Assembly (NCBI RefSeq): GCF_963676685.1
Contig: NC_092357.1
Location: 22,878,001 to 22,942,000 of the forward strand
Origin: Mytilus edulis
Taxonomy: Eukaryota
Reading direction: 5' to 3'
Length of the DNA: 64,000 bases
Shown here: positions 1 through 55,815 of the stretch, in pieces
Position numbering within the stretch: position 1 is the stretch's first letter
Layout: every line of letters starts with the position of its first letter
Program-made: the position numbers and the translations under genes
Notes under the pieces: generated by a model
Seen by the model: only the letters and a program-made list of their open reading frames with translations
Told to the model about the DNA's origin: nothing
Databases searched by the model: none

Positions 1-1044
1 TATTAAATCACGCGCTGTACATGCGCAATTAATAGAAATTAAGATCAAGCATGCACATTATAGAAATACTCTAATGTTAGCTTTAAAAATATGCTACATA
101 TAATAAGATCCAAGATCAATTTAAATGAGAAATACATTTAAAATTAAACTGTCAATTGTTCTTGAACAATTGAGAGGTCTTTCCTTTTGTAATGTAAAAT
201 ACATAATCCAACAGACGTAGAATGTATTGAAAAGGTCAAGGTCAACCTTAAAAAGCTCGAAAACACACTAAAAATCCTTTATATAAGGTTAAAAACACTA
301 AATTCGCACTCTGGGACATGACCTTGACCTTTGACCTTTTGACCTTTGGCAAGGTCATTAGTCCCCAATGCCATTACTGAAGACCCCAAGGGTCTAGGAC
401 CTTTGGTTATATAGAAAAAGCTGATTTTGTGTTTTCAGAAACCTAAAACAGGCTTTATGCCCCTTAAAAAAAGGTCAAATCTCTTCGGTCAAAATGTAAC
501 AAAGTTGCGCGGTAATGACCCAAACATTTTCCACTATTTAAAACTTCTGTAAGTATAATGGTTGCTGAGATTAATCCAAAACAAGGTGTAAGGTCAAAGG
601 TCAAGGTCAACATACAAATTTGACCTTGAGATATTTTTCGAAGATACAAGAATTGATGATGAATGGTGAAGATCCTAGGTCTCTACGACTTACGGTTTCT
701 GAGTTTTGGTGGTCCACCGACACCGGTTAATTTTCATAGGGGCATAACCCTACCAATGAGTCGTTGAATCTTTTCGATCCAAATGTAACGAAGAACTGGG
801 GTCTGGTCCTGAACAAATTTCACCCTTTGTTTTTTTTCTACCTATTATGGTTACGGTGTTGGAACGATAACAAGGTTTTTTGGTTTCGGAGGAATTACTC
901 CGAACCGACAAAATATTTCGACTAACAGGGTGAGTTCCAGATAGGTATTCATGACACCGATACAAAGTGTGAACATGAAAGCGACACGTCTTACGGTTTG
1001 GGCTGCTAACTTCGTCAAAGTTTGGCGGAAGAATAATAATAATA

Positions 1045-2807
1045 ATTAAAAACCAATTGTTCAAAGAACAATTGAAGGTCTTTCAACTAATAAAGATCTA
1101 TTTTGACATGAAAATATTAAAATTCAGTTAAAAATGTCAGTTCCTATGGCTTTATGATGTATAAATAGGAATTTAAAGCAAAGGTCAAAATCTAGAACGT
1201 CCAATTAACCTTTGACCTTGACCTCAATTTCAAGGTCATAGACTTAACATCTCGAATCAAAAGACACTAGTTCCTTAATATGTAAGGTTCATGAGTAATA
1301 TCACTTTACGCATAATTCTAAATATAAGAGAGGCAAAAACTCCCATTTATTGTCTACGCACCCTTCCAATCAAAATTTATGAGTTACGACATGTCGCAAC
1401 TAACAATTTAGTAAAAATAATTTGTCGAAATCTTATAAAGTTAATGAAAGTAAGTGAAAATAAGCCAAAATCAAAATTTAAAATTTGACCTTGACCTTTG
1501 ACCTTGACCTAATTTTCATTTTTTTGGACCAAGGATCTTAAATCAAAAGACCCTAGGTCTCTATCACTTATGGTTTACCAGTTAGAAATGCAAATCACTT
1601 ATATCATATATAAAAGTGGGATAACTCTCATATGGAGTCTCCGGATAGCTTCGGTCCAAATGAAACAGAACATCCTGAGGATATAACGAGCAATTTGGAA
1701 AAATAAATTTGTCGGTTTCTTATACGGTTGCGAAGCCTTAGAGATAACAATAAAAACAGTGTTCGGGGAGATAACTCTTATATGGGAAAGTATTCGGTTA
1801 AGCAGAGTTGGTTTCAAAAGCGTATAAACTGTTCGATATCATATTTCAAATATCTAAACGACATCTTGCGAAACAAAAAAACAGCGAAGGTAAAAAAAGT
1901 TGGCGGAAGAAAAAAAAAAATAATTAAAAACCAATTGTTCAAAGAACAATTGAAGGTCTTTCAACTAATAAAGATCTATTTTGACATGAAAATATTAAAA
2001 TTCAGTTAAAAATGTCAGTTCCTATGGCTTTATGATGTATAAATAGGAATTTAAAGCAAAGGTCAAAATCTAGAACGTCCAATTAACCTTTGACCTTGAC
2101 CTCAATTTCAAGGTCATAGACTTAACATCTCGAATCAAAAGACACTAGTTCCTTAATATGTATGGTTCATGAGTAATATCACTTTACGCATAATTCTAAA
2201 TATAAGAGAGGCAAAAACTCCCATTTATTGTCTACGCACCCTTCCAATCAAAATTTATGAGTTACGACATGTCGCAACTAACAATTTAGTAAAAATAATT
2301 TGTCGAAATCTTATAAAGTTAATGAAAGTAAGTGAAAATAAGCCAAAATCAAAATTTAAAATTTGACCTTGACCTTTGACCTTGACCTAATTTTCATTTT
2401 TTTGGACCAAGGATCTTAAATCAAAAGACCCTAGGTCTCTATCACTTATGGTTTACCAGTTAGAAATGCAAATCACTTATATCATATATAAAAGGGGGGA
2501 TAACTCTCATATGGAGTCTCCGGATAGCTTCGGTCCAAATGAAACAGAACATCCTGAGGATATAACGAGCAATTTGGAAAAATAAATTTGTCGGTTTCTT
2601 ATACGGTTGCGAAGCCTTAGAGATAACAATAAAAACAGTGTTCGGGGAGATAACTCTTATATGGGAAAGTATTCGGTTAAGCAGAGTTGGTTTCAAAAGC
2701 GTATAAACTGTTCGATATCATATTTCAAATATCTAAACGACATCTTGCGAAACAAAAAAACAGCGAAGGTAAAAAAAGTTGGCGGAAGAAAAAAAAAAAT
2801 AATAATA
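1045..2807 (-). mobile_element. Two near-identical subfamily-A HINE bodies (1045-1922, 1923-2807), each interrupted at its (AAT)n tract
   Basis: Each starts attaaaaaccaattgttcaaagaacaattgaaggtctttcaact and ends ttggcggaag-A(n)-(AAT)n, running directly into the next left end. Confidence 0.8.
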
Positions 2808-3751
2808 ATTAAAAACCAATTGTTCAAAGAACAATTGAAGGTCTTTCAACTAATAAAGATCTATTTTGACATGAAAATATTAAAATTTAGTTAAAAATGT
2901 CAGTTCCTATGGCTTTATGATGTATAAATATGAATTTAAAGCAAAGGTCAAAATCTAGAACGTCCAATTAACCTTTGACCTTGACCTCAATTTCAAGGTC
3001 ATAGACTTAACATCTCGAATCAAAAGACACTAGTTCCTTAATATGTATGGTTCATGAGTAATATCACTTTACGCATAATTCTAAATATAAGAGATGCAAA
3101 AACTCCCATTTATTGTCTACGCACCCTTCCAATCAAAATCAATGAGTTACGACATGTCGCAACTAACAATTTAGTAAAATAAATTTGTCGAAATCTTATA
3201 AAGTTAATGAAGTAAGTGAAAATAAGCCAAAATCAAAATTTAAAATTTGACCTTGACCTTTGACCTTGACCTAATTTTCATTTTTTTGGACCAAGGATCT
3301 TAAATCAAAAGACCCTAGGTCTCTATCACTTATGGTTTACCAGTTAGAAATGCAAATCACTTATATCATATATAAAAGGGGGGATAACTCTCATATGGAG
3401 TCTCCGGATAGCTTCGGTCCAAATGAAACAGAACATCCTGAGGATATAACGAGCAATTTGGAAAAATAAATTTGTCGGTTTCTTATACGGTTGCGAAGCC
3501 TTAGAGATAACAATAAAAACAGTGTTCGGGGAGATAACTCTTATATGGGAAAGTATTCGGTTAAGCAGAGTTGGTTTCAAAAGCGTATAAACTGTTCGAT
3601 ATCATATTTCAAATATCTAAAAGACATCTTGCGAAACAAAAAAACAGCGAAGGTAAAAAAAGTTGGCGGAAGAAAAAAAAAAATAATAATAATAATAATA
3701 ATAATCAGAACAAAACCTATAGGTCTTTCAACTGAAAGGTTGAAAGACCTA
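2808..3751 (-). mobile_element. Complete, uninterrupted subfamily-A HINE (~944 bp)
   Basis: A-type left end at 2808, then body, (AAT)n, and cagaacaaaacctat followed by the hairpin aggtctttcaac-tgaaag-gttgaaagacct (3721-3750). Confidence 0.8.
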
Positions 3752-3760
3752 ATAATAATA

Positions 3761-5542
3761 ATTAAAAACCAATTGTTCAAAGAACAATTGAAGGTCTTTC
3801 AACTAATAAAGATCTATTTTGATATGAAAATATTAAAATTCAGTTGAAAATGTCAGTTCCTATGGCTTAATGATGTATAAATATGAATTTCAAGCAAAGG
3901 TCAAAATCTAGAACGTCCAATTAACCTATGACCTTGACCTCAATTTCAAGGTCATAAACCAAGGATCCCAAATCAAAAGACCCTTGGTCTGTATTATGTA
4001 TGGTTCATGAGTAATATCACTTTAAACATAATTCTAAATATAAGAGGGGCGAACACTCCCATTTATTGTCTACGCACCCTTGCAACCAAAATTTATAAGT
4101 TACGACATGTCGCAACTAACAATTTAGTAAAAATAATTTGTCGATATCTTATAAGGTTAATGAAAATAAGTGAAAATAGGCCAAAATCAAAATTTAAAAT
4201 TTGACCTTGACCTTTGACCTTGACCTAATTTTCATTTTTTTAGACCAAGGATCTTAAATCAAAAGACCCTAGGTCTCTATCACTTATGGTTTACCAGTTA
4301 GAAATGCATATCACTTATATCATATACAAAAGGGGGGATAACGCTCAAATGGAGTCTCCGGATAGCTTCGGTCAAAATAAAACTGAACATCCTGAGGATA
4401 TAACGAGCAATTTGGAAAAATAAATTTGTCGGTTTCTTATACGGTTGCGAAGCCTTAGAGATAACAAGAAAAACAGTGTTCGGGGAGATAACTCTTATTT
4501 GGGAAAGAATTCAGTTAAGCAGAGTTGGTTTCAAAAGCGTATAAACTGTTCGATATCATATACCATATATCTAAGCGACATCTTGCGAAACAAAAAAACA
4601 GCGAAGGTAAAAAAAGTTGGCGGAAGAAAAAAAAAAATAATAATAATAATAATAATAATTAAAAACCAATTGTTCAAAGAACAATTGAAGGTCTTTCAAC
4701 TAATAAAGATCTATTTTGACATGAAAATATTAAAATTCAGTTAAAAATGTCAGTTCCTATGGCTTTATGATGTATAAATAGGAATTTAAAGCAAAGGTCA
4801 AAATCTAGAACGTCCAATTAACCTTTGACCTTGACCTCAATTTCAAGGTCATAGACTTAACATCTCGAATCAAAAGACACTAGTTCCTTAATATGTATGG
4901 TTCATGAGTAATATCACTTTACGCATAATTCTAAATATAAGAGAGGCAAAAACTCCCATTTATTGTCTACGCACCCTTCCAATCAAAATTTATGAGTTAC
5001 GACATGTCGCAACTAACAATTTAGTAAAAATAATTTGTCGAAATCTTATAAAGTTAATGAAAGTAAGTGAAAATAAGCCAAAATCAAAATTTAAAATTTG
5101 ACCTTGACCTTTGACCTTGACCTAATTTTCATTTTTTTGGACCAAGGATCTTAAATCAAAAGACCCTAGGTCTCTATCACTTATGGTTTACCAGTTAGAA
5201 ATGCAAATCACTTATATCATATATAAAAGGGGGGATAACTCTCATATGGAGTCTCCGGATAGCTTCGGTCCAAATGAAACAGAACATCCTGAGGATATAA
5301 CGAGCAATTTGGAAAAATAAATTTGTCGGTTTCTTATACGGTTGCGAAGCCTTAGAGATAACAATAAAAACAGTGTTCGGGGAGATAACTCTTATATGGG
5401 AAAGTATTCGGTTAAGCAGAGTTGGTTTCAAAAGCGTATAAACTGTTCGATATCATATTTCAAATATCTAAACGACATCTTGCGAAACAAAAAAACAGCG
5501 AAGGTAAAAAAAGTTGGCGGAAGAAAAAAAAAAATAATAATA
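3761..5542 (-). mobile_element. Two interrupted subfamily-A bodies (3761-4657, 4658-5542)
   Basis: A-type left ends at 3761 and 4658. The matching right ends are displaced to the stack at 6506-6659. Confidence 0.75.
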
Positions 5543-6482
5543 ATTAAAAACCAATTGTTCAGAGAACCATTGATGGTCTTTCCACCACTTACAACATATT
5601 TTGATGTAAAAATATTAAAAATTCAGTTGATATGTCAGTTCCTATGACTTTATGATGTCTAAATATGAATTTGGAGCAAAGGTCAAAATCTAGAACGTCC
5701 AATTAACCTATGACCTTGACCTCAATTTCAAGGTCATAGACTAAGGATCTCAAACCTAAAGACACTAGTTCCTTAATTATATATGGTTAATGAGTAATAT
5801 CACTTTACCCATAATTCTAAACATAAGAGGGGCGAAAACTCCCATTTATTGTCTTCGCACCCTTTCAACCAAAATTTATAAGTTACGACATGTCGCAACT
5901 AACAATTTAGTAAAAATAATTTGTCGATAAGTAACACGGTTTTTTAAAATAAGTGAAATAAGCCCAAATCAAAATTTATAATATGACCTTGACCTTTGAC
6001 CTTGACCTTATTTTCATTTTTTTGGACCAAGGATCTCAAATCAAAAGACCCTAGGTCTCTATCACTTATGGTTTACCAGTTAGAAATGCATATTCTTATA
6101 TCAAACATAAAAGGAGGGATAACTCTCATATGGAATCTATATACGGCTTCGGTCAAAATAAAACAGCACATCCTGAGGATATAACGAGCAATTTGGAAAA
6201 ATAAATTTGTCGGTTTCTTATACGGTTGCGAAGCCTTAGAGATAACAAGGAAAACAGTGTTCGGGGAGATAACTCTTATTTGGGAAAGTATTCGGTTAAG
6301 CAGAGTTGGTTTCAAAAGCGTATAAACTGTTCGATATCATATTCCAAAAATCTAAGCGACATCTTGCGAAACAAAAAAACAGCGAAGGAAAAAAATTAGG
6401 CGGAAGAAAAAAAAAAAAAAAAATAATAATAATAATCAGAAGAAATCCAATAGGTCTTTCCACGGAAAAGTGGAAAGACCTA
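5543..6482 (-). mobile_element. Complete subfamily-B HINE
   Basis: B-type left end (cagagaaccattgatggtctttccacc), B-diagnostic body variants (tttggagcaaa, ctcaaacctaaa, ggaatctatat, aaattaggcgg), and B hairpin aggtctttccac-ggaaaa-gtggaaagacct (6452-6481). Confidence 0.8.
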
Positions 6483-6659
6483 ATAATAATAATAATAATA
6501 ATAATCAGAACAAAACCTATAGGTCTTTCAACTGAAAGGTTGAAAGACCTAATAATAATAATCAGAACAAAACCTATAGGTCTTTCAACTGAAAGGTTGA
6601 AAGACCTAATAATCAGAACAAAACCTATAGGTCTTTCAACTGAAAGGTTGAAAGACCTA
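6437..6659 (-). repeat. Stack of four HINE terminal hairpin modules (B,A,A,A) separated by (AAT)n
   Basis: Hairpins at 6452-6481 (B) and 6521-6550, 6578-6607, 6629-6658 (A). Confidence 0.9.
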
Positions 6660-6671
6660 ATAATAATAATA

Positions 6672-8443
6672 ATTAAAAACCAATTGTTCAAAGAACAATT
6701 GAAGGTCTTTCAACCAATAAGGATCTATTTAGATATGAAAATATTAAAATTCAGTTGAAAATGTCAGTTCTTATGGCTTAATGATGTATAAATATGAATT
6801 TTAAGCAAAGGTCAAAATCTAGAACGTCCAATTTACCTATGACCTTCACCTCAATTTCAAGGTCATAGACTAAACATCTCAAATAAAAAGACACTAGTTC
6901 CTTAATATGTATGGTTCATGAGTAAAATCACTTTACGCATAATTCTTAATATAAGAGGGGCGAAAACTCCCTTTTATTGTTTACGCACCCTCGCAACCAA
7001 AATTTATAAGTTACGACATGTCGCAACTAACAATTTAGTAAAAAGAAATTGTCGATATCTTATAAGGTTAATGAAAAAAGGTGAAAATAAGCCAAAATCA
7101 AAATTAAGAATTTGACCTTGACCTTTGACCTTGACCTAATTTTCATTTTTTTGGACCAAGGATCTTAAATCAAAAGACCCTAGGTCTCTATCACTTATGG
7201 TTTACGAGCTAGAAATGCATATCACTTATATCATATATAAAAGGGGGGATAACTCTCATATGGAGTCTCCGGATAGCTTCGGTCAAAATGAAACAGAACA
7301 TCCTGAGGATATAACGAGCAATTTTGAAAAATAAATTTGTCGGTTTCTTATACGGTTGCGAAGCCTTAGAGGACACAAGAAAAACAGTGTTCAGGGAGAT
7401 AACTCTTACAAGGTAAAGTTTTTTGTTACGCGGTGTCTGTTTCAGAAGCGTATTAACTGTTCGATATCATATACCTTATATCTAAGCGACATCTTGTGAA
7501 ACAAAAAAACAGCGAAGGAAAAAAAAGTTGGCGGAAGAAAAAAAATAAAAATTAAAAACCAATTGTTCAAAGAACAATTGAAGGTCTTTCAACTAATAAA
7601 GATCTATTTTGACATGAAAATATTAAAATTCAGTTAAAAATGTCAGTTCCTATGGCTTTATGATGTATAAATATGAATTTAAAGCAAAGGTCAAAATCTA
7701 GAACGTCCAATTAACCTTTGACCTTGACCTCAATTTCAAGGTCATAGACTTAACATCTCGAATCAAAAGACACTAGTTCCTTAATATGTATGGTTCATGA
7801 GTAATATCACTTTACGCATAATTCTAAATATAAGAGAGGCAAAAACTCCCATTTATTGTCTACGCACCCTTCCAATCAAAATTTATGAGTTACGACATGT
7901 CGCAACTAACAATTTAGTAAAAATAATTTGTCGAAATCTTATAAAGTTAATGAAGTAAGTGAAAATAAGCCAAAATCAAAATTTAAAATTTGACCTTGAC
8001 CTTTGACCTTGACCTAATTTTCATTTTTTTGGACCAAGGATCTTAAATCAAAAGACCCTAGGTCTCTATCACTTATGGTTTACCAGTTAGAAATGCAAAT
8101 CACTTATATCATATATAAAAGGGGGGATAACTCTCATATGGAGTCTCCGGATAGCTTCGGTCCAAATAAAACAGAACATCCTGAGGATATAACGAGCAAT
8201 TTGGAAAAATAAATTTGTCGGTTTCTTATACGGTTGCGAAGCCTTAGAGATAACAATAAAAACAGTGTTCGGGGAGATAACTCTTATATGGGAAAGTATT
8301 CGGTTAAGCAGAGTTGGTTTCAAAAGCGTATAAACTGTTCGATATCATATTTCAAATATCTAAACGACATCTTGCGAAACGAAAAAACAGCGAAGGTGAA
8401 AAAAGTTGGCGGAAGAAAAAAAAAAATAATAATAATAATAATA
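6672..8443 (-). mobile_element. Two interrupted subfamily-A bodies (6672-7550, 7551-8443)
   Basis: A-type left ends at 6672 and 7551. The 6672 copy has a diverged patch at about 7370-7480. Confidence 0.75.
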
Positions 8444-9384
8444 ATTAAAAACCAATTGTTCAGAGAACCATTGATGGTCTTTCCACCACTTTCAACATAT
8501 TTTGATGTGAAAATATTAAAAATTCAGTTGATATGTCAGTTCCTATGACTTTATGATGTCTAAATATGAATTTGGAGCAAAGGTCAAAATCTAGAACGTC
8601 CAATTAACCTATGACCTTGACCTCAATTTCAAGGTCATAGACTAAGGATCTCAAACCTAAAGACACTAGTTCCTTAATATGTATGGTTTATGAGTAATAT
8701 CACTTTACACATAATTCTAAACATAAGAGGGGCGAAAACTCCCATTTATTGTCTACGCACCCTTTCAACCACAATTTATAAGTTACGACATGTCGCAACT
8801 AACAATTTAGTAAAAATAATTTGTTGATAAGTTATACGGCTTTTGAAATTAAGTGAAAATAAGCCAAAATCAAAATTTATAATATGACCTTGACCTTTGA
8901 CCTTGACCTTATTTTCATTTTTTTGGACCAAGGATCTCAAATCAAAAGACCCTAGGTCTCTATCACTTATGGTTTACCAGTTAGAAATGCATATTCTTAT
9001 ATCAAACATAAAAGGGGGATAACTCTCATATGGAATCTATATACAGCTTCGGTCAAAATAAAACAGCACATCCTGAGGATATAACGAGCAATTTTGAAAA
9101 ATAAATTTGTCGGTTTCTTATATGGTTGCGAAGCCTTAGAGATAACAAGGAAAACAGTGTTCGGGGAGATAACTCTTATTTGGGAAAGTATTCGGTTAAG
9201 CAGAGTTGGTTTTAAAAGCGTATAAACTGTTCGATATCATATTCCAAAAATCTAAGCGACATCTTGCGAAACAAAAAAACAGCGAAGGAAAAAAATTAGG
9301 CGGAAGAAAAAAAAAAAAAAAAAAATAATAATAATAATCAGAAGAAATCCAATAGGTCTTTCCACGGAAAAGTGGAAAGACCTA
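8444..9384 (-). mobile_element. Complete subfamily-B HINE
   Basis: B left end at 8444, B body variants, B hairpin at 9354-9383, followed by one A hairpin at 9405-9434. Confidence 0.8.
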
Positions 9385-9438
9385 ATAATCAGAACAAAAC
9401 CTATAGGTCTTTCAACTGAAAGGTTGAAAGACCTAATA

Positions 9439-12080
9439 ATTAAAAACCAATTGTTCAAAGAACAATTGAAGGTCTTTCAACTAATAAAGATCTATTTTGA
9501 TATGAAAATATTAAAATTCAGTTGAAAACGTCAGTTCCTATGGCTTCATGATGTATAAATATGAATTTAAAGCAAAGGTCAAAATCTAGAACGTCCAATT
9601 AACCTTTGACCTTGACCTCAATTTCAAGGTCATAGACTAAACATCTCGAATCAAAAGACACTAGTTCCTTAATATGTATGGTTCATGAGTAATATCACTT
9701 TACGCATAATTCTAAATATAAGAGGGGCGAAAACTCCCGTTTATTGTCTACGCACCCTTGCAACCAAAATTTATAAGTTACGACATGTCGCAACTAACAA
9801 TTTAGTAAAAATAATTTGTCGATATCTTATAAGGTTAATGAAAATAAATGAAAATAAGCCAAAATCAAAATTTAGAATTTGACCTTGACCTTTGACCTTG
9901 ACCTAATTTTCATTTTTTTGGACCAAGGATCTTAAATCAAAAGACCCTAGGTCTGTATCACTTATGGTTTACCAGTTAGAAATGCATATCACTTATTTCA
10001 TATACAAAAGGGGGGATAACGCTCATATGGAGTCTCCGGATAACTTCGGTCAAAATAAAACAGAACATCCTGAGGATATAACGAGCAATTTGGAAAAATA
10101 AATTTGTCGGTTTCTTATACGGTTGCGAAGCCTTAGAGATAACAAGAAAAACAGTGTTCGGGGAGATAACTCTTATTTGGGAAAGTATTCGGTTAAGCAG
10201 AGTTGGTTTCAAAAGCGTATAAACTGTTCGATATCATATTCAAAAAATCTAAGCGACATCTTGCGAAACAAGAAAACAGTGAAGGAAAAAAAAGTTGGCG
10301 GAAGAAAAAAAAAAATAATAATTAAAAACCAATTGTTCAGAGAACAATTGAAGGTCTTTCAACTAATAAAGATCTATTTTGATATGAAAATATTAAAATT
10401 CAGTTGAAAATGTCAATTCCTATGGCTTTATGATGTATAAATATGAATTTAAAGCAAAGGTCAAACTCTAGAACGTCCAATTAACCTTTGACCTTGACCT
10501 CAATTTCAAGGTCATAGACTAAACATCTCGAATCAAAAGACACTAGTTCCTTAATATGTATGGTTCATGAGTAATATCACTTTACGCATAATTCTAAATA
10601 AAAGAGGGGCCAAAACTCCCATTTATTGTCTACGCACCCTTGCAACCAAAATTTATAAGTTACGACATGTTGCAACTAACAATTTAGTAAAAATAATTTG
10701 TCGATATCTTATAAGGTTAATGAAAATAAGTGAAAATAAGCCAAAATCAAAATTTAGAATTTGACCTTGACCTTTGACCTTGACCTAATTTTCATTTTTT
10801 TGGACCAAGGATCTTAAATCAAAAGACCCTAGGTCTCTATCACTTATGGTTCACCAGTTAGAAATGCATATCACTTATATCATATACAAAAGGGGGGATA
10901 CCTCTCATATGGAGTCTCCGGATAGCTTCAGTCAAAATAAAACACAACATCCTGAGGATATAACGAGCAATCTGGAAAAATAAATTTGTCGGTTTCTTAT
11001 ACGGTTGCGAAGCCTTAGAGATAACAAGAAAAACAGTGTTCGGGGAGATAACTCTTATTTGGGAAAGTATTCGGTTAAGCAGAGTTGGTTTCAAAAGCGT
11101 ATAAACTGTTCGATATCATATTCAAAAAATCTAAGCGACATCTTGCGAAACAAGAAAACAGTGAAGGAAAAAAAAGTTGGCGGAAGAAAAAAAAAATAAT
11201 AATTAAAAACCAATTGTTCAGAGAACAATTGAAGGTCTTTCAACTAATAAAGATCTATTTTGATATGAAAATATTAAAATTCAGTTGAAAATGTCAATTC
11301 CTATGGCTTTATGATGTATAAATATGAATTTAAAGCAAAGGTCAAACTCTAGAACGTCCAATTAACCTTTGACCTTGACCTCAATTTCAAGGTCATAGAC
11401 TAAACATCTCGAATCAAAAGACACTAGTTCCTTAATATGTATGGTTCATGAGTAATATCACTTTACGCATAATTCTAAATAAAAGAGGGGCCAAAACTCC
11501 CATTTATTGTCTACGCACCCTTGCAACCAAAATTTATAAGTTACGACATGTTGCAACTAACAATTTAGTAAAAATAATTTGTCGATATCTTATAAGGTTA
11601 ATGAAAATAAGTGAAAATAAGCCAAAATCAAAATTTAGAATTTGACCTTGACCTTTGACCTTGACCTAATTTTCATTTTTTTGGACCAAGGATCTTAAAT
11701 CAAAAGACCCTAGGTCTCTATCACTTATGGTTCACCAGTTAGAAATGCATATCACTTATATCATATACAAAAGGGGGGATACCTCTCATATGGAGTCTCC
11801 GGATAGCTTCAGTCAAAATAAAACACAACATCCTGAGGATATAACGAGCAATCTGGAAAAATAAATTTGTCGGTTTCTTATACGGTTGCGAAGCCTTAGA
11901 GATAACAAGAAAAACAGTGTTCGGGGAGATAACTCTTATTTGGGAAAGTATTCGGTTAAGCAGAGTTGGTTTCAAAAGCGTATAAACTGTTCGATATCAT
12001 ATACCATATATCTAAGCGACATCTTGCGAAACAAAAAAACAGCGAAGGTAAAAAAAGTTGGCGGAAGAAAAAAAAAAATA
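9439..12080 (-). mobile_element. Three interrupted subfamily-A bodies (9439-10320, 10321-11201, 11202-12080)
   Basis: A-type subTIR gaaggtctttcaact at each left end. The 10321 and 11202 copies share private variants (caaactctaga, aaaagaggggcc, ggttcaccag). Confidence 0.75.
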
Positions 12081-13029
12081 ATTAAAAACCAATTGTTCAG
12101 AGAACCATTGATGGTCTTTCCACCACTTACAACATATTTTGATGTGAAAATATTAAAAATTCAGTTGATATGTCAGTTCCTATGACTTTATGATGTCTAA
12201 ATATGAATTTGGAGCAAAGGTCAAAATCTAGAACGTCCAATTAACCTATGACCTTGACCTCAATTCCAAGGTCATAGACTAAGGATCTCAAACCTAAAGA
12301 CACTAGTTCCTTAATATGTATGGTTTATGAGTAATATCACTTTACGTATAATTCTAAACAAAAGAGGGGCGAAAACTCCCATTTATTGTCTACGCACCCT
12401 TTCAACCAAAATTTATAAGTTTAGACATGTCGCAACTAACAATTTAGTAAAAATAATTTGGTGATAAGTTATACAGCTTTTGAAAATAAGTGAAAATAAG
12501 CCAAAATCAAAATTTATAATATGACCTTGACCTTTGACCTTGACCTTATTTTCATTTTTTTGAACCAAGGACCTCAAATCAAAAGACCCTAGGTCTCTAT
12601 CACTTATGGTTTACCAGTTAGAAATGCAAATTCTTATATCAAACATAAAAGGGGGGATAACTGTCATATGGAATCTATATACGGCTTCGGTCAAAATAAA
12701 ACAGAACATCCTAAGGATATAACGAGCAATTTGGAAAAATAAATTTGTCGGTTTCTTATACGGTTGCGAAGCCTTAGAGATAACAAGAAAAACAGTGTTC
12801 GGGGAGATAACTCTTATTTGGGAAAGTATTCGGTTTAAACGAGTTGGTTTCAAAAGCGTATAAACTGTTCGATATCATATTCCAAAAATCTAAACGACAT
12901 CTTGCGAAACAAAAAAACAGCGAAGGAAACAAATTAGGCGGAAGAAAAAAAAAAAAAATAATAATAATAATAATAATAATAATCAGAAGAAATCCAATAG
13001 GTCTTTCCACGGAAAAGTGGAAAGACCTA
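12081..13029 (-). mobile_element. Complete subfamily-B HINE
   Basis: B left end at 12081, B body variants, B hairpin at 12999-13028. Confidence 0.8.
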
Positions 13030-13212
13030 ATAATAATAATAATAATCAGAACAAAACCTATAGGTCTTTCAACTGAAAGGTTGAAAGACCTAATAATAAT
13101 AATAATCAGAACAAAACCTATAGGTCTTTCAACTGAAAGGTTGAAAGACCTAATAATAATAAACAGAAGAAATACAGTAAGGTCTTTCCCTTTTGTAAAA
13201 GGAAAGACCTTA
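12984..13212 (-). repeat. Final stack of terminal hairpin modules (B,A,A,C)
   Basis: Hairpins at 12999-13028 (B), 13062-13091 and 13122-13151 (A), and 13179-13211 (C). Confidence 0.9.
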
Positions 13213-13683
13213 ATTACATACAACAAAAATATTGGATTGCCTCCCTTACACTTGACATTTATTTAACACTGTCGAAACACACATTTTTAAATCATTTGAT
13301 GTTACTACATGTACTACTTCATAGTAAACTACCTTAAAACCAAACGTTGACCCTATTTGGAAAGGACGGACGCACGGCCCCATCGAAACATGATATGCTC
13401 CTACAAAATATTGTTAGCGGTACATACAATTGTTTAGAAAGGGAATCGCCAGAGGTAATTCTTCTTAGATAATATAAATATTTATAGACTAAAATTGTCT
13501 AAAGATATTTGTTTTGCATTGAATAGATTATCATATAATAAAATCAAATGCTTAAAAGAATTACATAATTTTTAATCGTAAATTTACAAAACTTTTATGT
13601 CTTACAGAAAAAAAGATATAAATAAACTCAAATGTATAATACTAGCATCGTAAATCAAAGTCAAGGGGGTAATGTAGCATGCA

Positions 13684-13905
13684 AGAGGGGTCTGAATGAG
13701 GTTTACAGACTATAATAGATTAACAGACCAACTTACTAATGAATAGGGCAGAATGGGTAAGTTATAAAAGAAAAGAAGAAAATACTAAGGTGCTAGAATA
13801 TCAAAAAAAGGAACAATTGGCAACAAAAATAAAGAAAAGAGAAAATTGTCTTAAAAAAATCCAAAATACAGAAATGAAGACCCCACGAAGACCCCCATCC
13901 ATTTA
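13684..13905. repeat. Decayed MITE-like repeat with a purine-rich (AGAAT-rich) interior; related copies at ~32498-32692 and ~35915-36113
   Basis: All three copies start with gag/aag-ggggtc-like sequence, have agaata-rich interiors, and end with cccc..atcc-like motifs. Similarity judged by eye. Confidence 0.35.
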
Positions 13906-16900
13906 CAGTCACTTGTGCAACGAAATATAAGATACAATGGGACAAGTGAATTTCCAATATTGTTACATGTAAATGTTGATAAGAGGTTATAAAGATGAAT
14001 ACTAAATTAAAGAACTAATTAATCTTGCTATCTTGTCCACGGAGGACAGAACTACAACTGTATATCGAAAACTTTTGTTTTATACGAAAAACATGTAAGC
14101 ACCTAATTTTTTACTTTTATAGTAACCTACAAGTACAAGCATGCGTTGCAATACATGTATATATGTAACATTTTTGCGATCACATATCTGTATTCATTAA
14201 TTTATTTATCTAACTTTTGTGTTTTTCCTCTTTTTTTTACGGGGTGTGTGGTAACTGTTGTGTTACTGTCTAATTGGTATATATCCCACATTTTCTTTTA
14301 TTCATAGAAACGTTTTTAACAATATAATAAAGATCGTGTATACAGCTCGCAATACTTTCCTAGTAATTTAAAAATATGCAGTTATTGAACGCTTAAGTCT
14401 TGTTATAAAAGATTGATAAGATATAATAATAGTTCTTCAAAAACTATAAAACAACTCTTTTATGTTTGAATAATGTTTCTTTCCACTTTGTATGCCTTAA
14501 GTCGACTAAAAGAAATCTGTAAGCAATTCTGGCATAAAAAAAAAGTTCATTTAAACATGAATTGGAACTTGAAGTGGTTTAATATTTATTTTTAAAAGTT
14601 CTTGTACTGGTAGCAAAGCATGGGTTATAATTTCTAGATATTATATCAGATACATAAACCTTCGAAATTCACTGTTAATTTTTTTCTCCTATATGCATTA
14701 AATATTATCACCTAAAATTAATCAAACTGTTATAGATCAATAAATATTTACAACAACGCTAAGGAGAGGAATAGAAAACCAATTGTTACTTTCCACGACT
14801 TTCCGCTTCATTTACTTAACAAAATGTTTTCTGGGGCTATTTGACAAAAAGACAGGCAACGAATAAAACAAAGAATATGACAATCAGCACCCCCCCCCCC
14901 CCCCCCCCCCCCTAAAAAAAAAGAGAAAAAAAGCCATAACTTAAAACAAATAAAAATAAGATTTGCAAATAGCACATAATGTTTAGAAAACAAAATGAGT
15001 TTGTGTAAATTATACTTTTGTGTAAATTATACTAATGTCTTCGCCGTAATTGATATTATAGACTATAGACTAAGTACTGCTTGTATTCAATGTTAATATA
15101 TAACTACGTGTAATTCTTTAAAATAAGCTGATAGTAAATGTATGTTGTAAAACGGAAATATTGTCCCTTATGCATTTTATTCGGTTTTCTATTCCGATAA
15201 TGACGATCACATGTTTTTACTACAGGAAAAACGGTACTATTTATTCTGCCATAGGCGACAATATTAACATTTTCTAAATTTACAACTTTTTAAGATAAAA
15301 ACCTTGATAAAACAGTTATGTTGTGTTAGTACTTTATTATTGTGTTTTAAAAATAAAAGCCAAATAGTGTCATGACCAACTTCCAACGGAGCTTGTTTAT
15401 GTTATCCATGCCCACCGTCATTTTGCACCAAATTTGTAAAATTTTGCAAGTCTTTTCAAATAATTCTCTACAAAATATTTCAATAGGTTTCAAAATTTAT
15501 GTTGTAAATATACACACTGCAGTTATTCATAGATAAATAAAAAAATATATTGTACCCTTACATCCAATCACAGTGCTCCTAATTTGACTTCCTTCACCTG
15601 CCTTGGGTACACAAAAGGCCAACCTAATGCTGGGAAAATTAAATACTACCGTTTTCCCTATATCTAGTTTAGCTGAAATGTGAAATACGGCTCCAAATAA
15701 ATCATCATGTACAAATGTAGGCCATATGGAAAGGCTATATATTAGACCAGTTTTCAAATGACCTTATATGAATAACTTAAAAAAAAATCAGGCAGCCATA
15801 TGCTGTTTTAATTTGAAGTAGGCAAGTAGTAAATCCATCTCCCTCAGTTAACATAAAAAAATAAAGCCCCCAACAAACTGAGGTTAGCGTTTAATACCAA
15901 CAATCCTTCAATCTTGCATGTAAACAGTAGGTGGTCCGCCTTCCTTCTTTAACAAAAACGAGCCGCCCCGATAAAGCTAAAGAATCAGTCTGTGGCGTGT
16001 TAACACCAAAAAATATTCAATGCTGCGTGAAGACAAGAAGGTACTCCGCTATAGATCATTAACAATAAAGTAGCCGCCATGCATGGTATAGCCTAGCGTG
16101 CTAATAATGGCGTTTAACACCAACAGTCGCGTTCAATTTTGATGGTAAAAAAAAGTAGGTATCAATAGACGATTTGTAAAGAAGTATATTTTTTTCTTTC
16201 ATTTAACAAATTAAAGATGTCAAAGATCAGCGAGCTACCCAAAACAAACAAGAATTTCGCAATCAGTCACGAGGACCTTATAGTTATGGTTTCCAAGGAC
16301 TTTTAAAATTGCTTTTATGATAATAGGAAGACATCATGAATTTGATTCTCTACTCAAAGAGTCTACATTTATTTTCTTGTTTTAGGGGACGACTATTTGA
16401 TATTTAATGGGGAAGGATTAAAGGGGAATTTTCAGTGGACGGAACTTTTATTTTCATACTTATTTTTTCAGTTGCTTCGATGCAAGAATATTTACTTTTC
16501 TTTGGTACACAATCATTTGTGTGTTTGCATTTTAGACCTTTAGTTTTACTTATCTTGAGCAAGATTTGTTTCCAATTCAGGTTATTTTCTGAAACCTCTT
16601 CCCCTACCAGAAAATCCCCCATTTCTAATTGTGTGTTTCGTTTTGTTTTTATCTTTTTCCAAGGCGTGTTTTTTTCGTAAATGATATTTCTCCTTTATCT
16701 TAATTGACAAACTTGAAGTATTGTTTTGTTTACATTAATGTGGGACAATATTACGTTAGAAGAATAGACTCAGAATCAACTTATATTGAGTAATATTTGA
16801 ATTGATTATCAATACAGATAATCAAATATTAAAAATTAAAAATTTACCTCAATCGTCTTCCTCAGATAACAGAATTTATAATCTAAATTTGACCTTACAA

Positions 16901-25849: not shown

Positions 25850-26760
25850 TTTCTTTGTTTTATTTTGATATTTTTATTGTCTTTGAATTGGTTCATAAAA
25901 TAAACTGACAGTCACACGTATCAAATAATATGTTTATTTTTATTTCGGATTTCCCTTGGTTTTATATTATATTTCTATAGTCTTAAAATTTGTTCATCGA
26001 ATATATTGACGCGCATCAAATGAGATGTTACACAATGTATACTTTTACGATATATGTTTATTTTAGTTTCGGATTTCTCTTGGTATTTTATATTGGTTTT
26101 ATCGTTGTCTTTGAATTGGTTCATGGAGTATATTGACGTGCATCAAATGAGATGTAATACTTTTACGATATGTTTATTTTTATTTCGAAGTTCTCTTGGT
26201 TTTATATTTGTATATCTATATGTCTGGTTCATCGAGCATATTGACGCGCATCATATATAAGTTGTTATACGTTTACGTTGTTTATTTTTATATTCGATTT
26301 CTTATGGTTTGTATTTTTATTTTTATTGTCTTTGAATTGGTTCATGGAATTCATATTGACGCGCAACAAATCAGATGTTATACTTTAACGATAGGCATGT
26401 TTTTATTTCGGATGGTTTTCTCTTGGTATTTCATGTCTTTGAATTGGTTAATCGAATGCATTGACGCATCAAATGAGATCTTATATTTTGAAGATATGTT
26501 TATTTTTATTTCGGATTTCTCTTGGTTTATATTGGTATTTCTATTGTCTTTGAATTGGTTCATGGAATATATTTACACGCATCAAATGTGATGTTATATT
26601 TTTAAGATAATTATGTTTATTTTTATTTCCGATTTATCTTGGTTTTATATTGGTATTTCTGTATATATAGTCTTTAAATTGGTTCATTGGGTATGTTGAT
26701 GCATATCATGAATATTTTTTGTTTCGGATTTCTCTTAGTTTAATATTCATACTTATAGAA
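25850..26760. repeat. Degenerate ~115-125-bp tandem repeat, ~7-8 copies
   Basis: Recurring tttatttttatttcggatttctcttggt...tctttgaattggttcat...attgacgcgcatcaaatgagatg. Confidence 0.85.
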
Positions 26761-28039: not shown

Positions 28040-29030
28040 ATATCGATTCAATAGTTATTTAATTATTTGACACGAATCGATATTTATTGAATGTTCTGAC
28101 ATCGACTTGATTGTCATTGAATAACCTTACACCGACTTCATACTTATTGAATGAAGGACATCAACTCAGTAGTCATTTTTGAAATTGATCTGACATCAAT
28201 TCGATAGTTATAGAATGGTCTGATATCGATTCAATAGTTATAAAGTATTGAATGATCTTATATCGATTTGATAGTTATTGAATGCTCTGACATGAACTCT
28301 ATATTTATTGAATGATCTGACAAGAATTCGATATTAATTAATAATCGTCATCGATTCGATAGTTATTTAATAATCTGACATTGACTCGATAGTTATTGAA
28401 GATTTTACTATGATTCGATAGTTAATAAATAATCTGACCTGACATTGACTTGATATTCATTGAATGATTTGATTTCGACTCGATAGTTTTTGAATGATTT
28501 GACATCAATTCGATACTTATACATTGCTATCACACCGATTTGGTAGACTAGTTATTTAATGATGTGACATCGTCTCAATAGATAATGAATGATCTGATAT
28601 CGATTAGATATTCATTGAATGGTCTGACATTGACTCGATAGTTATAGAATGGTCTGACATCAATTCAATACTTACTGAACATTCTGACATCGATGGTGTA
28701 GGCATTATATGATCTGACATCGACTCGATTAGTTATTGAATGGTCAAATATCGAGCAAATAGGTTTTGAATGGCTTTATTGAATGGTCTGATACCGCCTC
28801 GTTATAATAAAGAATTTGACATCAACCTCAATATTGATTGAATGATCTGACATGAACTATAAACCCGATAGTTATTCATTGAACTGACATCAACCTGATG
28901 GTATTGAATAATCTGATATCGACTCGATATTTTTACAGTGGTCGTCAATCGATTTGTTAGTTATTAGATGATCTGACATCGTCTCGATAGATATTTAAGG
29001 ATCTGATAACGACTCGATATATCATGATCA
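28040..29030. repeat. Degenerate ~30-bp minisatellite (~30 copies)
   Basis: Consensus approximately gacatcgactcgatagttattgaatgatct. Confidence 0.85.
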
Positions 29031-41530: not shown

Positions 41531-41686
41531 AATCCCCGGACCCTGGATCGGCCCCTGGTTATATAATCTAAAAGTACCAATGATATTAGTTTGAATGCTT
41601 TGGTTTAATCTCTTTAAAAATAATAAAATTACCGATACCATATTGATGTAATTGATACTTTATATAACTAATAATTAAATTCAGAC

Positions 41687-42162
41687 AAGTTGGACCATAA
41701 TACTGTAATACCTCAACTTCAATGCGATTTGTGTACTCGACTTGTGTGGTAGAGAAGTTGGACCATAATACTTCAATAACTCAACTTCAATGCGATTTAT
41801 GTACTCGACTTGTGTGGTAGAGAAGTTGGACCATAATACTTCAATACCTCAACTTCAATGCGATTTGTATACTCGACTTGTGTGGTAGAGAAGTTGGACC
41901 ATAATACTTCAATACCTCAACTTCAATGCGATTTGTGTACTCGACTTGTGTGGTAGAGAAGTTGGACCATAATACTTCAATACCTCAACTTCAGTGCGAT
42001 TTGTGTACTCGACTTGTGTGGTAGAGAAGTTGGACCATAATACTTCAATAACTCAACTTCAGTGCGATTTGTGTACTCGACTTGTGTGGTAGAGAAGTTG
42101 GACCATAATACTTCAATACCTCAACTTCAGTGCGATTTGTGTACTCGACTTGTGTGGTAGAG
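41687..42162. repeat. 68-bp tandem repeat, 7 near-identical copies
   Basis: aagttggaccataatacttcaatacctcaacttcaatgcgatttgtgtactcgacttgtgtggtagag at 41687, 41755, 41823, 41891, 41959, 42027 and 42095. Confidence 0.97.
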
Positions 42163-42639
42163 ACAGCTTTTTATGTTACATGCAATGAAAAAAGGCTACA
42201 AAGATCTATTGTTTGCTTTGGAAAATTTTTGTTATCTTAGTCAGTGTTTTATGACATATTGCTTAAGAATCATTATATACTGAAGTGCATCTTATGTTTA
42301 AGAAATTAGTCGAACACATCTTTCATCTGAAGTTGCATAACAAAGTTATATAAAAAGCTACATTGTTTAAACGAGACATAATTAAAGTAGGTAATAATAT
42401 AAACACAAATTGGATATTAAGAACAAAAGCTTTTGCTGATCATATATTCTCTTAGCTATTTAATTAAAAGAAGAATGCATGTGGTATATTTATAACTATC
42501 TCTGGATATCGAAAATTGCTACTTTTTTATATTTACCAAACATTTTCGTACTTTACGAGTTTTATAACCCACATCCTATTACCGACTATCGGTAAAGCAG
42601 ATGAAACAGGTAACAATGATCAAAATCTGCTGTACGCCA

Positions 42640-53008: not shown

Positions 53009-55136
53009 TAACACTTCTAAGGCCTATGAAAGAAAATCCAGAAAAACATGCAATTAAGAACATGTTATTTTCATTTTTTTTTTAACTGTAGTGCTTAAAA
53101 CAACTCCCCAATTTTGTTGATTCTAATTTCTATATAGGGAAAAAGAACTTATCAATTTTTTTATTTTTCTATAATGGTCTTACGTCTTATGTTCGTCAAT
53201 TTTTTGCTTGTCAATTACACCTCAGTTATACAGTACATTTAGTGAGATGTACTGTCTGGCTTATATAGGACCTTGGGAAAATATGCCAAGAAAATGTATA
53301 CTTTTTAGAAAACAGTAATTCACTTACAAAACCTCTTTACACACTTCGAATAATGAACAAACAAATTAGGTTACTTGATAATCGTAAGTTAGGTGTTTTC
53401 AATAGATTCAGGAGAAATTTTTAATTGTTGTTTAACCTCGGTGTTGAGTGCATAAATTAAAATGTACTATTAATATTTAATCAGACATCCTGCAATATGT
53501 ATACATATGCAGTGACATAATGGATAGAAAAGATTCTTTTTAACTCGCACACAGATATCTGTATGAGACCAATGTGAATAAGTATATTCTGAAATTTTTT
53601 AAACGTATAGTACTAAACAAATACACTACAGATGTTTTATTCACTGCATGATCGATATTTACTTTTTAAAGCGTTGCTTTTCATGCTTTTCTTATATACC
53701 TGATAACTACATACTAAAATTTGAAAGGGTAGTTGAAAACTCATTTGTAAAGACATAAAAATTCTCAGTTAGAAGAATGAACTAATGTCTTCACTTTGAG
53801 TATAAAGGCCGTAATTAATAAATCAGAATTACTTCGCTAAAATTTAGATAAAGAAAAATTGTTAAAAGAAATGTAACACGGATAAAATAAATTTAGATGA
53901 ATATATAATTAAGTTTATGTTTCGTTTCTTAATTACATATGTTTCTTTGTATTTTGATTTTCTAAAAGCACAGGGTATCAATAAATAAAGTCTACTTCAC
54001 ATTCAAGTATCTTCTTTTTTTCAAAAACGTCTGTATTATTTACATGACAACTATCGTTAATCAGTTAACCTGGGGTTTCCGCTTTACATGAGAGGTGCAT
54101 TTACAGTGCGATCGACGACATGAAAAAGAAGACATATGGAGATTCTAGCAGACGCACATAACAAAACCCAAAGCAAATGGACATCGCTTGTATTCCTGAT
54201 CTTCATAACGGCAAAGTCCGGTCTTCAATCCGAATCCCCGCTACTCACTGTCATTCACGAGAACACCTAGCCCAGCGTTTAGATGATTTTGAGAATGTTT
54301 TCATTAACGATTGTCCGTCAGCAGCTCCTGACTGTGTTAGATATGGAGCTAAAGATTGTCTATATAAAGCGGCGGAATACTAATATACCAAAAAACTCAG
54401 CAAACAAACTGAAAAACACTTGAGGAAAAACACAACGCAACGACCAAAAAAAAACCCCGAAAAACATGACATAAAAAAAATAAAAAATCACAAAATTCTA
54501 TTTAGAAGAAAAATCCTACTTATATCCGGATAGTTATATCTTGTCATTCGTTAGAATTATTTATTTTTAAATGTATGAAATTTATGAAATTTATGAAATA
54601 TTGAATTCGCGTTCGTGAGTTTAACCTTTCGAATAAAGCGAACTTCCTGAAAGATCAAATAAGCGGGACAGTAACTTTTGAGATTTAGCCTTAATCGCGA
54701 ATTAAGCAAAAACGAATACCTCACGAAAGATACTTTTCTAGCCCTGGCCATATTTGAAAAGTTCTTTTCATACGAATTTACACCTAAATTGCATGACTTA
54801 TTAATTTTCTATAGCCATAAATTTCATTTGAAGCAGAATATGATTCTTTAGAATTCCCAAGAGTTTATGTCCTAAAATGCATTTTGACAATCATTTCTAT
54901 ACCAAGATCTTTAAAGTTCAAGAATATTTACTCAAATTACTCAATTATATAATTATTGCGTAAATAAATCAGTTTGACAGCTTTTGTAAAATAAATAAAT
55001 TTGGATCGAACAACTAGTCATTAGCATGCATATAGATATTTATTATATATCTGCTTTTTTCTCTTTTGTTAATATTTGCACCGCATACAGCGGTTCATTG
55101 ATTATAGAACACTGAGATTAAACGCTATAATAATTG

Positions 55137-55815
55137 ATATTCCAGATATATACAAATACATTTACTATAACTTTGTCTTTAACAATTCAACATGCAGGAA
55201 CACATTCCTTTGATAGCCTGTTTTGAATCCTGAGAAGTCATACTTTATAAAAGATGGCATAATGTTCTTTCAATATCTTTTTCTTCTCATTTTGACATCA
55301 AAAATAAGGCCTCTCTGTGGAAGGCTTGCACAATTTGTCTTGACATGCTTGATGGTGTGGGTTGATATCCCAGATATATAGAAATAGATTTACCCTAAAA
55401 TATTGTCTTTAACAATACAACACGCAGGAAGACATTCCTACTCTGTGTTTAATCCTGTGAAATAGTACTTCGTAAAAGATGCCATAATGTTCTTTCAATA
55501 TCTTTTTTCTTCTCATTTTGACATTAGAAATAAGGCCTCTCTGTGGAAGGCTTGCATAATTTGTCTTGACATGCTTAATGGTGTGGGTTGATATCCCAGA
55601 TATATAGAAATAGATTTACCGTAAAATTTTGTCTTAAACAATACAACACGCAGGAACAAATTCCTAGTCTGTGTTTAATCCTGAGAAATAGTACTTTACA
55701 AAAGATGCCATAATTTCCTTTCAGTATCTTTTTCTTCCCATTTTGAAATGAGATATAAGACATCTCTGTGAAAGGCTCGCAGAATTTTTCATGACTTGCC
55801 ATACGGTGTGGGTTC
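55137..55815. repeat. ~226-bp tandem repeat, 3 copies
   Basis: gatat-ccagatatata-aaata-attta... starts at 55137, 55364 and 55590. Confidence 0.92.

Follow-up and report, generated by a model that had tools for sequence, protein, structure and literature searches.

A 13-kb array (positions 143-13212) within a 64-kb window of the Mytilus edulis genome (C14:22,878,001-22,942,000; the assembly comprises 1.37 Gb, with 14 chromosome-sized contigs denoted C1, C14, and so on) has the appearance of a satellite with a period of 880 bp. Our analysis indicates that this array is very probably a stack of Helentron-like transposable elements, each inserted in the microsatellite of an earlier one, and that the same pattern occurs genome-wide. 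The window is the whole stretch of DNA that was analysed, and positions without a contig refer to it. A preliminary description of this DNA had attributed the last-in-first-out order of type-matched ends to elements inserted in earlier ones, and this reading is supported by other loci, by the counts of ends, by solo copies, by the relatives of the units, and by an empty site.

Layout of the array and types of its ends

The ends of the elements were located by scanning the + strand of the whole window for a shared core, GGTCTTTC. There are 25 + strand sites inside the array, and the rest of the window contains a single unrelated site (18220). In 14 of the 25 sites the core is preceded by the palindrome CAATTGTTC..GAACAATTG, and these will be called inverted repeat (IR)-bearing ends; the others are hairpin ends (Table 1). 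Three intrinsic types can be distinguished by the motif located 3' of the core, i.e., AAC (type A), CAC (type B), and C(C)TTTT (type C). This motif is common to the IR-bearing end and to the 5' arm of the hairpin, and the 17 nt that precede the hairpin and the last 14 nt of the body are type-specific as well. The scan confirmed the 14 left ends, the 11 hairpins, and the three types of the preliminary description at their positions.

Writing IR-bearing ends with their bodies as capitals and hairpins as closing brackets, the order of the ends is C A A A )a A A B )b )a )a )a A A B )b )a A A A B )b )a )a )c. Every B body lies directly 5' of a B hairpin, and the sole C hairpin is the last end, 13 kb from the sole C body, as had been described. 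The A' unit at 6672, which carries the subterminal inverted repeat (subTIR) motif AACC, has no matching hairpin within the window. The sequence TTAATTA found 3' of the C hairpin is common to two other C ends located in unique flanks.

The hairpins, folded as single-stranded DNA, have energies of -10.5 to -11.4 kcal/mol (z -4.1 to -5.9), which none of 200 shuffles equalled, and the stems of types A and B differ by a compensatory change (AAC/GTT vs CAC/GTG). The array contains no open reading frame (ORF) of at least 200 aa and thus has no coding capacity. It was invisible as such to Tandem Repeats Finder, since the period limit was 500; the output of this program consisted of a 13-bp motif about every 880 bp and of 51-63-bp tandem units at 6422-6696, 9332-9440, and 12965-13162.

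Last-in-first-out order across the genome

A genome search with a single A unit returned 3354 first-look candidates, mostly in arrays on many chromosomes, and 14 other arrays from that search were taken as a sample. All 14 loci consist of one-orientation runs of end plus body, interrupted by piles of 1-7 hairpins. They also contain extra subfamilies, namely A' (subTIR AACC, hairpin ACCT), B' (with a 1150-bp body), a family with ATCC hairpins, and longer C-like elements.

The preliminary description had proposed to parse other clusters as brackets. We took body ends as opens and hairpins as closes, defined the classes by the bodies and by the hairpins immediately 3' of them, and scored the largest non-crossing, class-matched pairing. 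In the null model the first hairpin after each body was kept fixed and the classes of the outer hairpins were shuffled within loci (2000 shuffles). The 14 loci gave 90 matched pairs, against a shuffle mean of 83.1 and a maximum of 89, so that 0/2000 shuffles reached the observed value. A cruder test with three classes (A/B/C) was weakly significant (30/2000 shuffles), because most piles are single-class; body-end tokens and finer types were used instead.

Several loci illustrate this order. At C1:47.88M the bodies B, B', A, C are followed by the ends C, A, B', B; at C14:10.0M the order holds to a depth of seven; and at C11:72.8M an A/B nest lies inside a C pair, with the C body just upstream. 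A second sample, based on position and independent of the A-unit query, consisted of the first 100 ends of each kind, hairpins and IR ends, on C1. In this sample, C1:24.824-24.835M contains first one CAC-type body, next 11 A bodies, and then 9 A hairpins, and the sole CAC hairpin comes last. The haplotig C155 and the chromosome copy at C1:35.18M show the same 12 ends in the same order.

The numbers of the two ends also agree. The 14 loci contain 126 hairpins and 137 body ends, and by type the counts are 49 AACT vs 50 AAC hairpins, 29 AACC vs 30 ACCT+ATCC, 28 CAC vs 33 hairpins, and 16 C vs 13 hairpins. Genome-wide, 3274 A/B hairpins were counted vs 2816 A/B IR ends, i.e., about 1:1.

Other observations were made in these loci. 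In L032 (C1:35.18M), a related body at about 3985-4848 has quite different ends and starts with ATATAGCTACTTCTGG. Bodies starting with AGGGAAAAAACTGGAGTTGTCG come directly after hairpin piles at C14:10.0M, C5:57.7M, C11:52.7M, and C14:3.78M, and they pair with ATCC-type hairpins. The presence of differing ends on related bodies suggests a modular exchange of ends between families. In L048/L049 (C14:3.78-3.80M), a 4.5-kb higher-order unit, made of a three-type nest and 2.6 kb of other sequence, occurs three times with identical end order, which indicates that nests are themselves segmentally duplicated. Very large one-orientation stacks of 50-60 kb are found at C9:19.608-19.657M (C-type) and C1:27.376-27.437M (A/B-type).

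Solo copies, an empty site and copy number

Solo copies of about 940 bp with matching ends had been predicted, and copies of this kind exist, with sizes of about 940-990 bp. In many places on C1, a CAC-type IR end is paired in isolation with a CAC-type hairpin on the same strand, 850-1160 bp away. In addition, the C bodies at C1:103.148M and C2:65.308M have a C hairpin within 20-56 nt downstream.

An empty site was also looked for. For the window's own insertion, the assembly was searched for such a site in a haplotig or at a paralogous position, and neither flank was found in a second copy beside the other. About 9.5 kb upstream of the window (C14:22,868,463-22,869,201), two stretches are 77-85% identical to the right flank of the array; they may correspond to an old local duplication and to a possible paralogous empty site.

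The check gave a result at another locus. Four public runs were compared with the C1:47.88M nest (L036) and 1 kb of flank on each side; one of them, X10, is labelled as a different organism from the other three. A 384-nt contig of X10, at single-copy depth, joins L036 positions 1904-2165 to 5940-6053 with 2 letters between, and the entire 3.77-kb four-element nest is absent from it. The borders of the absent DNA are ATATTAAAAACC, the outermost IR end (type B), and GAAAGACCTAAT, the last hairpin (type B). This result indicates that the inserted DNA of a stack is bordered by its first IR end and by its last hairpin, and that no long target duplication is formed. Internal joints at this locus derive from paralogous copies and were excluded. 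In raw reads of about 1.4x, the depth at C1:47.88M was about 1 on the flanks and 90-1350 on the elements, suggesting hundreds to a thousand or more copies at an identity of at least 95%.

Relationships among the units and alternative explanations

The array mixes subfamilies that are 85-96% identical, each of them with nearer relatives elsewhere in the genome. Its units have copies of 99-100% identity on other chromosomes vs 92-96% for their neighbours. Copies of unit 1045 whose identity rounds to 100% are located on C9, C1, and C5, as well as on C155 (haplotig of the C1 copy), and C11 and C10 carry 99% identical copies of the C element of the window. For unit 6672, the identity to all the other units of the array is 92-93%, yet it is 99% for copies on C1, C11, C5, C8, and C6. 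The junctions between units are of two kinds, with 0-4 interposed hairpin ends. A classical satellite, in which neighbours should be the closest relatives and the units uniformly head-to-tail, is contradicted by the relatives of unit 6672 and by the two kinds of junction.

Local duplication is nevertheless part of the history of the array. Duplicated tracts were assessed by pairwise global alignment, as self-BLAST gave too few high-scoring segment pairs. The segment 10091-11121 is the same as 10972-12002 save for one difference in A-run length; its 881-bp period is out of register with the ends of the elements, and this tandem duplication accounts for one of the three A units without hairpin. 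Local duplication thus adds to the growth of the array. Units 1045 and 1923 differ at 3 positions and could possibly be another tandem duplication, and a loss between the (TAA)n tracts on either side may account for the third absent hairpin. The preliminary description had set aside both rolling-circle concatemers and ordinary satellite amplification; both are indeed disfavoured, but one period was duplicated locally.

The alternative that survives best, although we regard it as unlikely, is that the array arose by a few events and not by thirteen. Composites such as A(B) or A(A(B)), already nested elsewhere, would have moved as units into C, and 880-bp unequal crossing-over would have done most of the local growth. 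The duplicated period, the close similarity of units 1045 and 1923, and the threefold occurrence in the window of A-A-B with hairpins B, A are in agreement with this idea, as is the fact that the sole empty site lacks a whole four-element nest at once. In addition, the Fusarium chimera model, with several 5' termini (PMC5148889), shows how composites could move. On the other hand, the corresponding units of the three A-A-B blocks diverge by 0.6%, 2.5%, and 7.5%, and therefore the blocks were not duplicated as blocks. The lengths of the microsatellites at the junctions also vary between blocks, and the closest relatives of unit 6672 are on other chromosomes. Moreover, composites still need self-insertion, so that the number of events would change, not their kind. 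The 13 inner units may have been single arrivals or partly pre-nested composites.

We consider very improbable a rolling-circle concatemer, in which a circle that had lost its terminator would be replicated several times and integrated as a tandem array in which one end is present many times and the other once (Xiong et al., 2014, as cited in PMC12628747). The near-identical runs without intervening hairpins (1045/1923/2808 and 10321/11202) could be read in this way, and that review cites plant arrays in which several 5' ends accompany one 3' end. Such a concatemer fails to account for the mixed subfamilies with nearer relatives elsewhere and for the approximately 1:1 ratio of the ends, both genome-wide and by type, and it would not produce a type-palindromic order of the ends.

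An equally small probability is given to an assembly artefact, in which the piles and the order of the units would come from a misassembled high-copy repeat. Some units 2.7 kb apart are up to 100% identical; yet the same grammar is found at no fewer than 14 loci on many chromosomes, the haplotig and the chromosome copy agree end for end, and hairpin-to-IR-end junctions are abundant in contigs assembled from the reads of other organisms.

Least probable of all is the integration of circles by homologous recombination between microsatellites, or plain unequal exchange in (TAA)n, without transposase-made ends: all junctions lie in a (TAA)n/A-run tract able to support recombination or slippage, but this process predicts the guest hairpin before the guest body and the host hairpin directly after it, whereas the hairpin directly 3' of a body matched its class in 46/48 cases in the 14-locus sample.

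Insertion target

Every internal junction of the window lies within the A-run/(TAA)n tract located between body and hairpin, and when the guest is removed a continuous microsatellite is restored. Among the first 100 IR ends on C1, 54 come after TAATAA and 12 after an A-run, either alone or with one TAA; 11 are in direct contact with a hairpin end, and the other 23 are in other DNA. Since (TAA)n tracts are a minute fraction of the genome, the insertion preference is extreme, even allowing for inflation by composites. In 20 of the 23 non-nested ends the preceding letters are AA, i.e., TT follows on the conventional strand. The X10 empty site has no repeat at the junctions. Given an ambiguity of 1-4 nt in the termini, the cut may be at TT, but an A|T phase also fits.

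All the elements of a stack have one orientation. The element's own microsatellite appears to be its preferred target, and strand-specific recognition of this target would fix the orientation. The preliminary description had spoken of insertion into the previous element. Insertion into earlier elements stands, but insertions enter any microsatellite segment of the stack, not solely that of the previous element, and siblings occur.

Identity and orientation of the elements

The 5' block of DINE-1/HINE elements comprises a subTIR, an IR complementary to this, and a microsatellite; at the 3' end, a second subTIR is followed after a few nt by a stem-loop of 7-11 bp. These elements insert at TT or T-rich sites without target site duplication (TSD) (PMC2374699, PMC4067079, PMC7492417). 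In the mussel elements, the subTIRs are GGTCTTTCAAC, 33 nt inside one end, and GTTGAAAGACC at the other, and they co-vary by type (AAC, CAC, C(C)TTTT). The hairpin end is formed by a subTIR and its complement, with a 4-6-nt loop, and the (TAA)n/A-run tract is 17 nt away. At the other end, the 9-bp palindrome is separated from the subTIR by 2-3 nt and from the terminus by about 10 nt; its stem-loop, with -6.9 to -8.2 kcal/mol in types A and C, is less stable in type B.

Read on the minus strand of the window, the elements fit the DINE-1/HINE layout point for point. Consequently, the hairpin end, previously named the right end, is the conventional 5' end, and the IR end, previously the left end, is the conventional 3' end, so that this naming has to be reversed. 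The re-orientation makes the target a (TTA)n tract plus a T-run, in line with the published T-rich preference, and it does not affect the bracket logic. The elements are non-autonomous, non-coding, and Helentron-like (HINE/DINE-1-type), of about 0.9 kb. The earlier assignment to the Helentron type thus holds for the end architecture, on whose structure the class membership is based. A canonical Helitron (5'-TC ... CTRR-3') was rejected, the termini on the + strand being (A)TTAAAAACC ... GAAAGACC(TAAT).

A search for a possible autonomous partner gave 150 genome matches to Helitron_like_N, many of them in open frames of 2000-3250 aa. In one class (597-nt matches, 119-121 bits), 10 of about 27 matches have an A/B array at a distance of 4.5-24 kb, and in all ten the strand is opposite to the left-to-right direction of the preliminary description. 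Candidates for the autonomous partner are thus provided by this class. At two C-type loci, another class of Helitron_like_N ORF is found on the same strand; in view of these exceptions the direction of the ORFs backs the re-orientation weakly, and the re-orientation rests on the end architecture. The apurinic/apyrimidinic endonuclease domain (PF03372), which distinguishes Helentron from Helitron2, was also searched for, and 150 of 2329 candidates were scored. All the matches listed were in frames of up to about 1300 aa and were read as LINE (long interspersed nuclear element)-like, and none of them was beside the Rep ORFs.

In the A' subfamily, the 3' arm of the hairpin, GGTTGAAAGACC, complements the subTIR of the opposite end perfectly over 12 nt, but its pairing with the 5' arm of its own hairpin requires a bulge. 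Examples are window 6672-6715 and the hairpins at L037/L038 (C8:2.2M). In A', the complementarity between the two ends is thus better preserved than the local hairpin.

Proposed mechanism

An element consists of a type-specific hairpin end, 17 nt, and a (TAA)n/A-run tract, with an inverted subTIR, a 9-bp stem-loop, and about 10 terminal bases at the far end. Young subfamilies (A1, A', B, B', C) would insert, in one fixed orientation, into the T-rich tract of a resident copy. The host would be split and its hairpin end displaced outward, and repeated insertion would leave a pile of hairpins in the reverse order of the bodies. The outcome would be an 880-bp "satellite" of bodies, punctuated by end piles of 51-63 bp. 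A putative source of the enzyme is the family of Rep/helicase ORFs of about 3000 aa found near the arrays. Unequal exchange of whole periods, together with loss and gain of the 51-63-bp end units between (TAA)n tracts, would blur the record.

Several observations weigh against this interpretation. The bracket string of the preliminary description gave the right order, but it is unbalanced, with 14 opens vs 11 closes and three A units without hairpin. Some loci, e.g., C5:57.7M and C1:35.18M, show surplus hairpins or class mismatches. The X10 empty site shows the nest as one insertion-sized unit and not a stepwise filling, and no intermediate (partially filled) allele was seen in the four runs at C1:47.88M. 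Moreover, the share of ends in (TAA)n is inflated if nested composites move or duplicate as units, and the exact termini are ambiguous by 1-4 nt.

The exchange and the loss or gain of end units just mentioned would explain the three unclosed units of the window and the surplus ends at some loci. In addition, the left-end tokens miss other kinds of end, such as those of a family starting with AGGGAAAAAACTGG and of units at C1:35.18M, and some of the seemingly surplus hairpins may have partners that were not recognised. Because of the three unclosed units more than one parse is possible, and the parse of the window is not unique in detail; the B-with-B and C-with-C pairings are fixed.

Beyond the nesting itself, we tentatively put forward a more general model, which we find plausible without leaning towards it. 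The T-rich microsatellite by the 5' hairpin might be a favoured strand-specific site, so that each insertion would add target and arrays would grow by preferential attachment into satellite-like blocks whose brackets give a relative chronology. The co-varying types of subTIR might mean that the two ends of an element are recognised jointly as partners, either through base pairing between them or through type-specific binding, and nested hosts might stay mobilisable with their guests.

Coordinates and other features of the window

Table 1. Parts of the array, its flanks, and Helitron_like_N matches close to related arrays.
Feature	Position	Strand	Basis or remark
Left flank	1-142		Single-copy in the assembly (genome search returns the window alone)
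IR-bearing ends, starts	143, 1045, 1923, 2808, 3761, 4658, 5543, 6672, 7551, 8444, 9439, 10321, 11202, 12081	+	Core scan
Hairpin ends, cores	3722; 6453, 6522, 6579, 6630; 9355, 9406; 13000, 13063, 13123, 13181	+	Core scan
Outermost element C: IR end, body, left remnant of (TAA)n tract	143-1044	+	Sequence and core scan
Details of element C	palindrome 153-176; subTIR core from 176; body end GGCGGAAGA at 1024-1032	+	
Three A1 units (1045, 1923, 2808), each leading into A-run/(TAA)n	1045-3704	+	Mutual identity 98.6-99.7%
Single A hairpin (17 nt pre-hairpin and 12-bp stem), closes unit 2808	3705-3749	+	
Units A (3761), A1 (4658), B (5543)	3761-6435	+	
Four-hairpin pile B, A, A, A	6436-6657	+	Spacers (TAA)2-8
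Units A' (6672), A1 (7551), B (8444)	6672-9337	+	
Two-hairpin pile B, A	9338-9433	+	
Units A (9439), A (10321), A (11202), B (12081)	9439-12982	+	
Tandem duplication of one 881-bp period	10091-12002	+	Pairwise global alignment
Last pile, first three ends B, A, A	12983-13150	+	
C hairpin, closes the C element opened at 143	13163-13211	+	Right remnant of the (TAA)n tract of C just before
Right flank	13212-14700		Haplotig copy absent; weak paralogous matches on the same chromosome, about 9.5 kb upstream of the window
Ten Helitron_like_N sites near arrays	C8:2,240,789; C12:69,699,266; C12:64,418,893; C12:64,456,310; C10:82,256,123; C5:15,910,890; C14:3,815,001; C1:35,163,877; C1:116,351,146; C14:23,971,720		Frames up to 3092 aa

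Elsewhere in the window there are four other tandem arrays, located at 41683-42163 (68 bp x 7, 97% matches), 55134-55814 (226 bp x 3), 26035-26660 (about 110 bp x 5.6), and 28042-28742 (30 bp x 23), which might be internal repeats of other elements. An uninterrupted ORF of 371 aa at 58171-59286 (+) has a full-length match to the Innexin family (E 7e-89).

Relation to known systems and significance

The mussel elements share with DINE-1/HINE (Yang and Barbash, 2008, PMC2374699; Thomas et al., 2014, PMC4067079) the lack of coding sequence, 11-12-bp subTIRs, a hairpin-forming IR, an adjacent microsatellite, a 7-11-bp stem-loop beyond the other subTIR with compensatory changes between families, thousands of copies, and apparently T-rich sites without long TSD. 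They differ in that their microsatellite, a (TTA)n tract with a T-run, is separated from the hairpin by only 17 nt, and in that they have no central tandem repeats. In addition, they are mostly located inside each other's microsatellites, an arrangement that we did not find described in PMC2374699 or PMC4067079.

The Cg_HINE/pearl elements of oysters (Vojvoda Zeljko et al., 2020, PMC7492417) share the bivalve host, the left-flank (LF) subTIR, IR, and microsatellite, the right-flank (RF) subTIR and palindrome, and the link to satellite-like arrays. In the oyster elements, the satellite is an internal array of 100-500-bp monomers, whereas in the mussel the "monomer" is the whole element and the array consists of nested copies. 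The work on Cg_HINE (PMC7492417) makes no mention of nesting, and an ordered, type-matched stacking of ends was not found in the oyster literature. Complex loci with elements inserted in other elements are nonetheless a shared trait, as far as they are treated in a review (PMC12628747) that describes Helitron "graveyard" loci in C. gigas; this review and two oyster satellite papers report complex loci with Helitron parts inside other elements.

In Fusarium, short duplicated 5' termini of non-canonical Helitrons were attributed to self-insertion, and chimeras with multiple 5' termini were proposed to be mobile (Chellapan et al., 2016, PMC5148889). The duplicated 5' termini are of similar size (31-85 nt vs 51-63 nt in the mussel), and in both systems a copy is inserted near the 5' end of another. 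The Fusarium cases are few, of a single family, and without typed order, whereas the mussel shows thousands of ends, co-varying types, stacks at least 7 deep, and an identified target tract. The tandem Helitron arrays of Xiong et al. (2014), as presented in PMC12628747, share tandem Helitron-derived units and repeated termini; their model, as given there, predicts many ends to one and uniform units, in contrast to the ends at about 1:1 and the heterogeneous units of the mussel.

Site preference leading to tandem copies is also known. Dimers of transposable elements formed by double insertion are described as seeds of satellites (McGurk and Barbash, 2018, as cited in PMC12628747); Micron and MuTAnT are transposons that target simple repeats (PMC4486113); and Paramecium Helitrons insert strand-specifically in telomeric repeats (PMC13085455). 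In these systems, site preference produces tandem copies and strand-specific insertion in a repeat fixes their orientation, as proposed for the mussel. Unlike the elements that target simple repeats, the mussel element carries the target repeat itself, so that every insertion would add target.

Thus, self-insertion, multiple 5' termini, and tandem dimers as satellite seeds are ideas already known. In the literature searched, we found no description of typed last-in-first-out stacks formed by insertion into the element's own microsatellite and giving rise to genome-wide satellite-like arrays. The finding has a practical consequence for annotation, because tandem-repeat tools report an 880-bp satellite and a 51-63-bp minisatellite, and transposon tools report truncated copies and "multiple termini". 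It also offers a testable route from a transposon to a satellite-like array without internal tandem repeats or rolling-circle concatemers, in which the element as a whole is repeated and becomes arranged in tandem by nesting. Since the order of the ends records events, the relative ages of subfamily bursts could be worked out from these arrays, and very young insertions could be genotyped in populations of mussels. If it is true that the target is carried by the element itself, this would explain the frequent co-occurrence of HINE-type elements and satellite-like DNA in bivalves.

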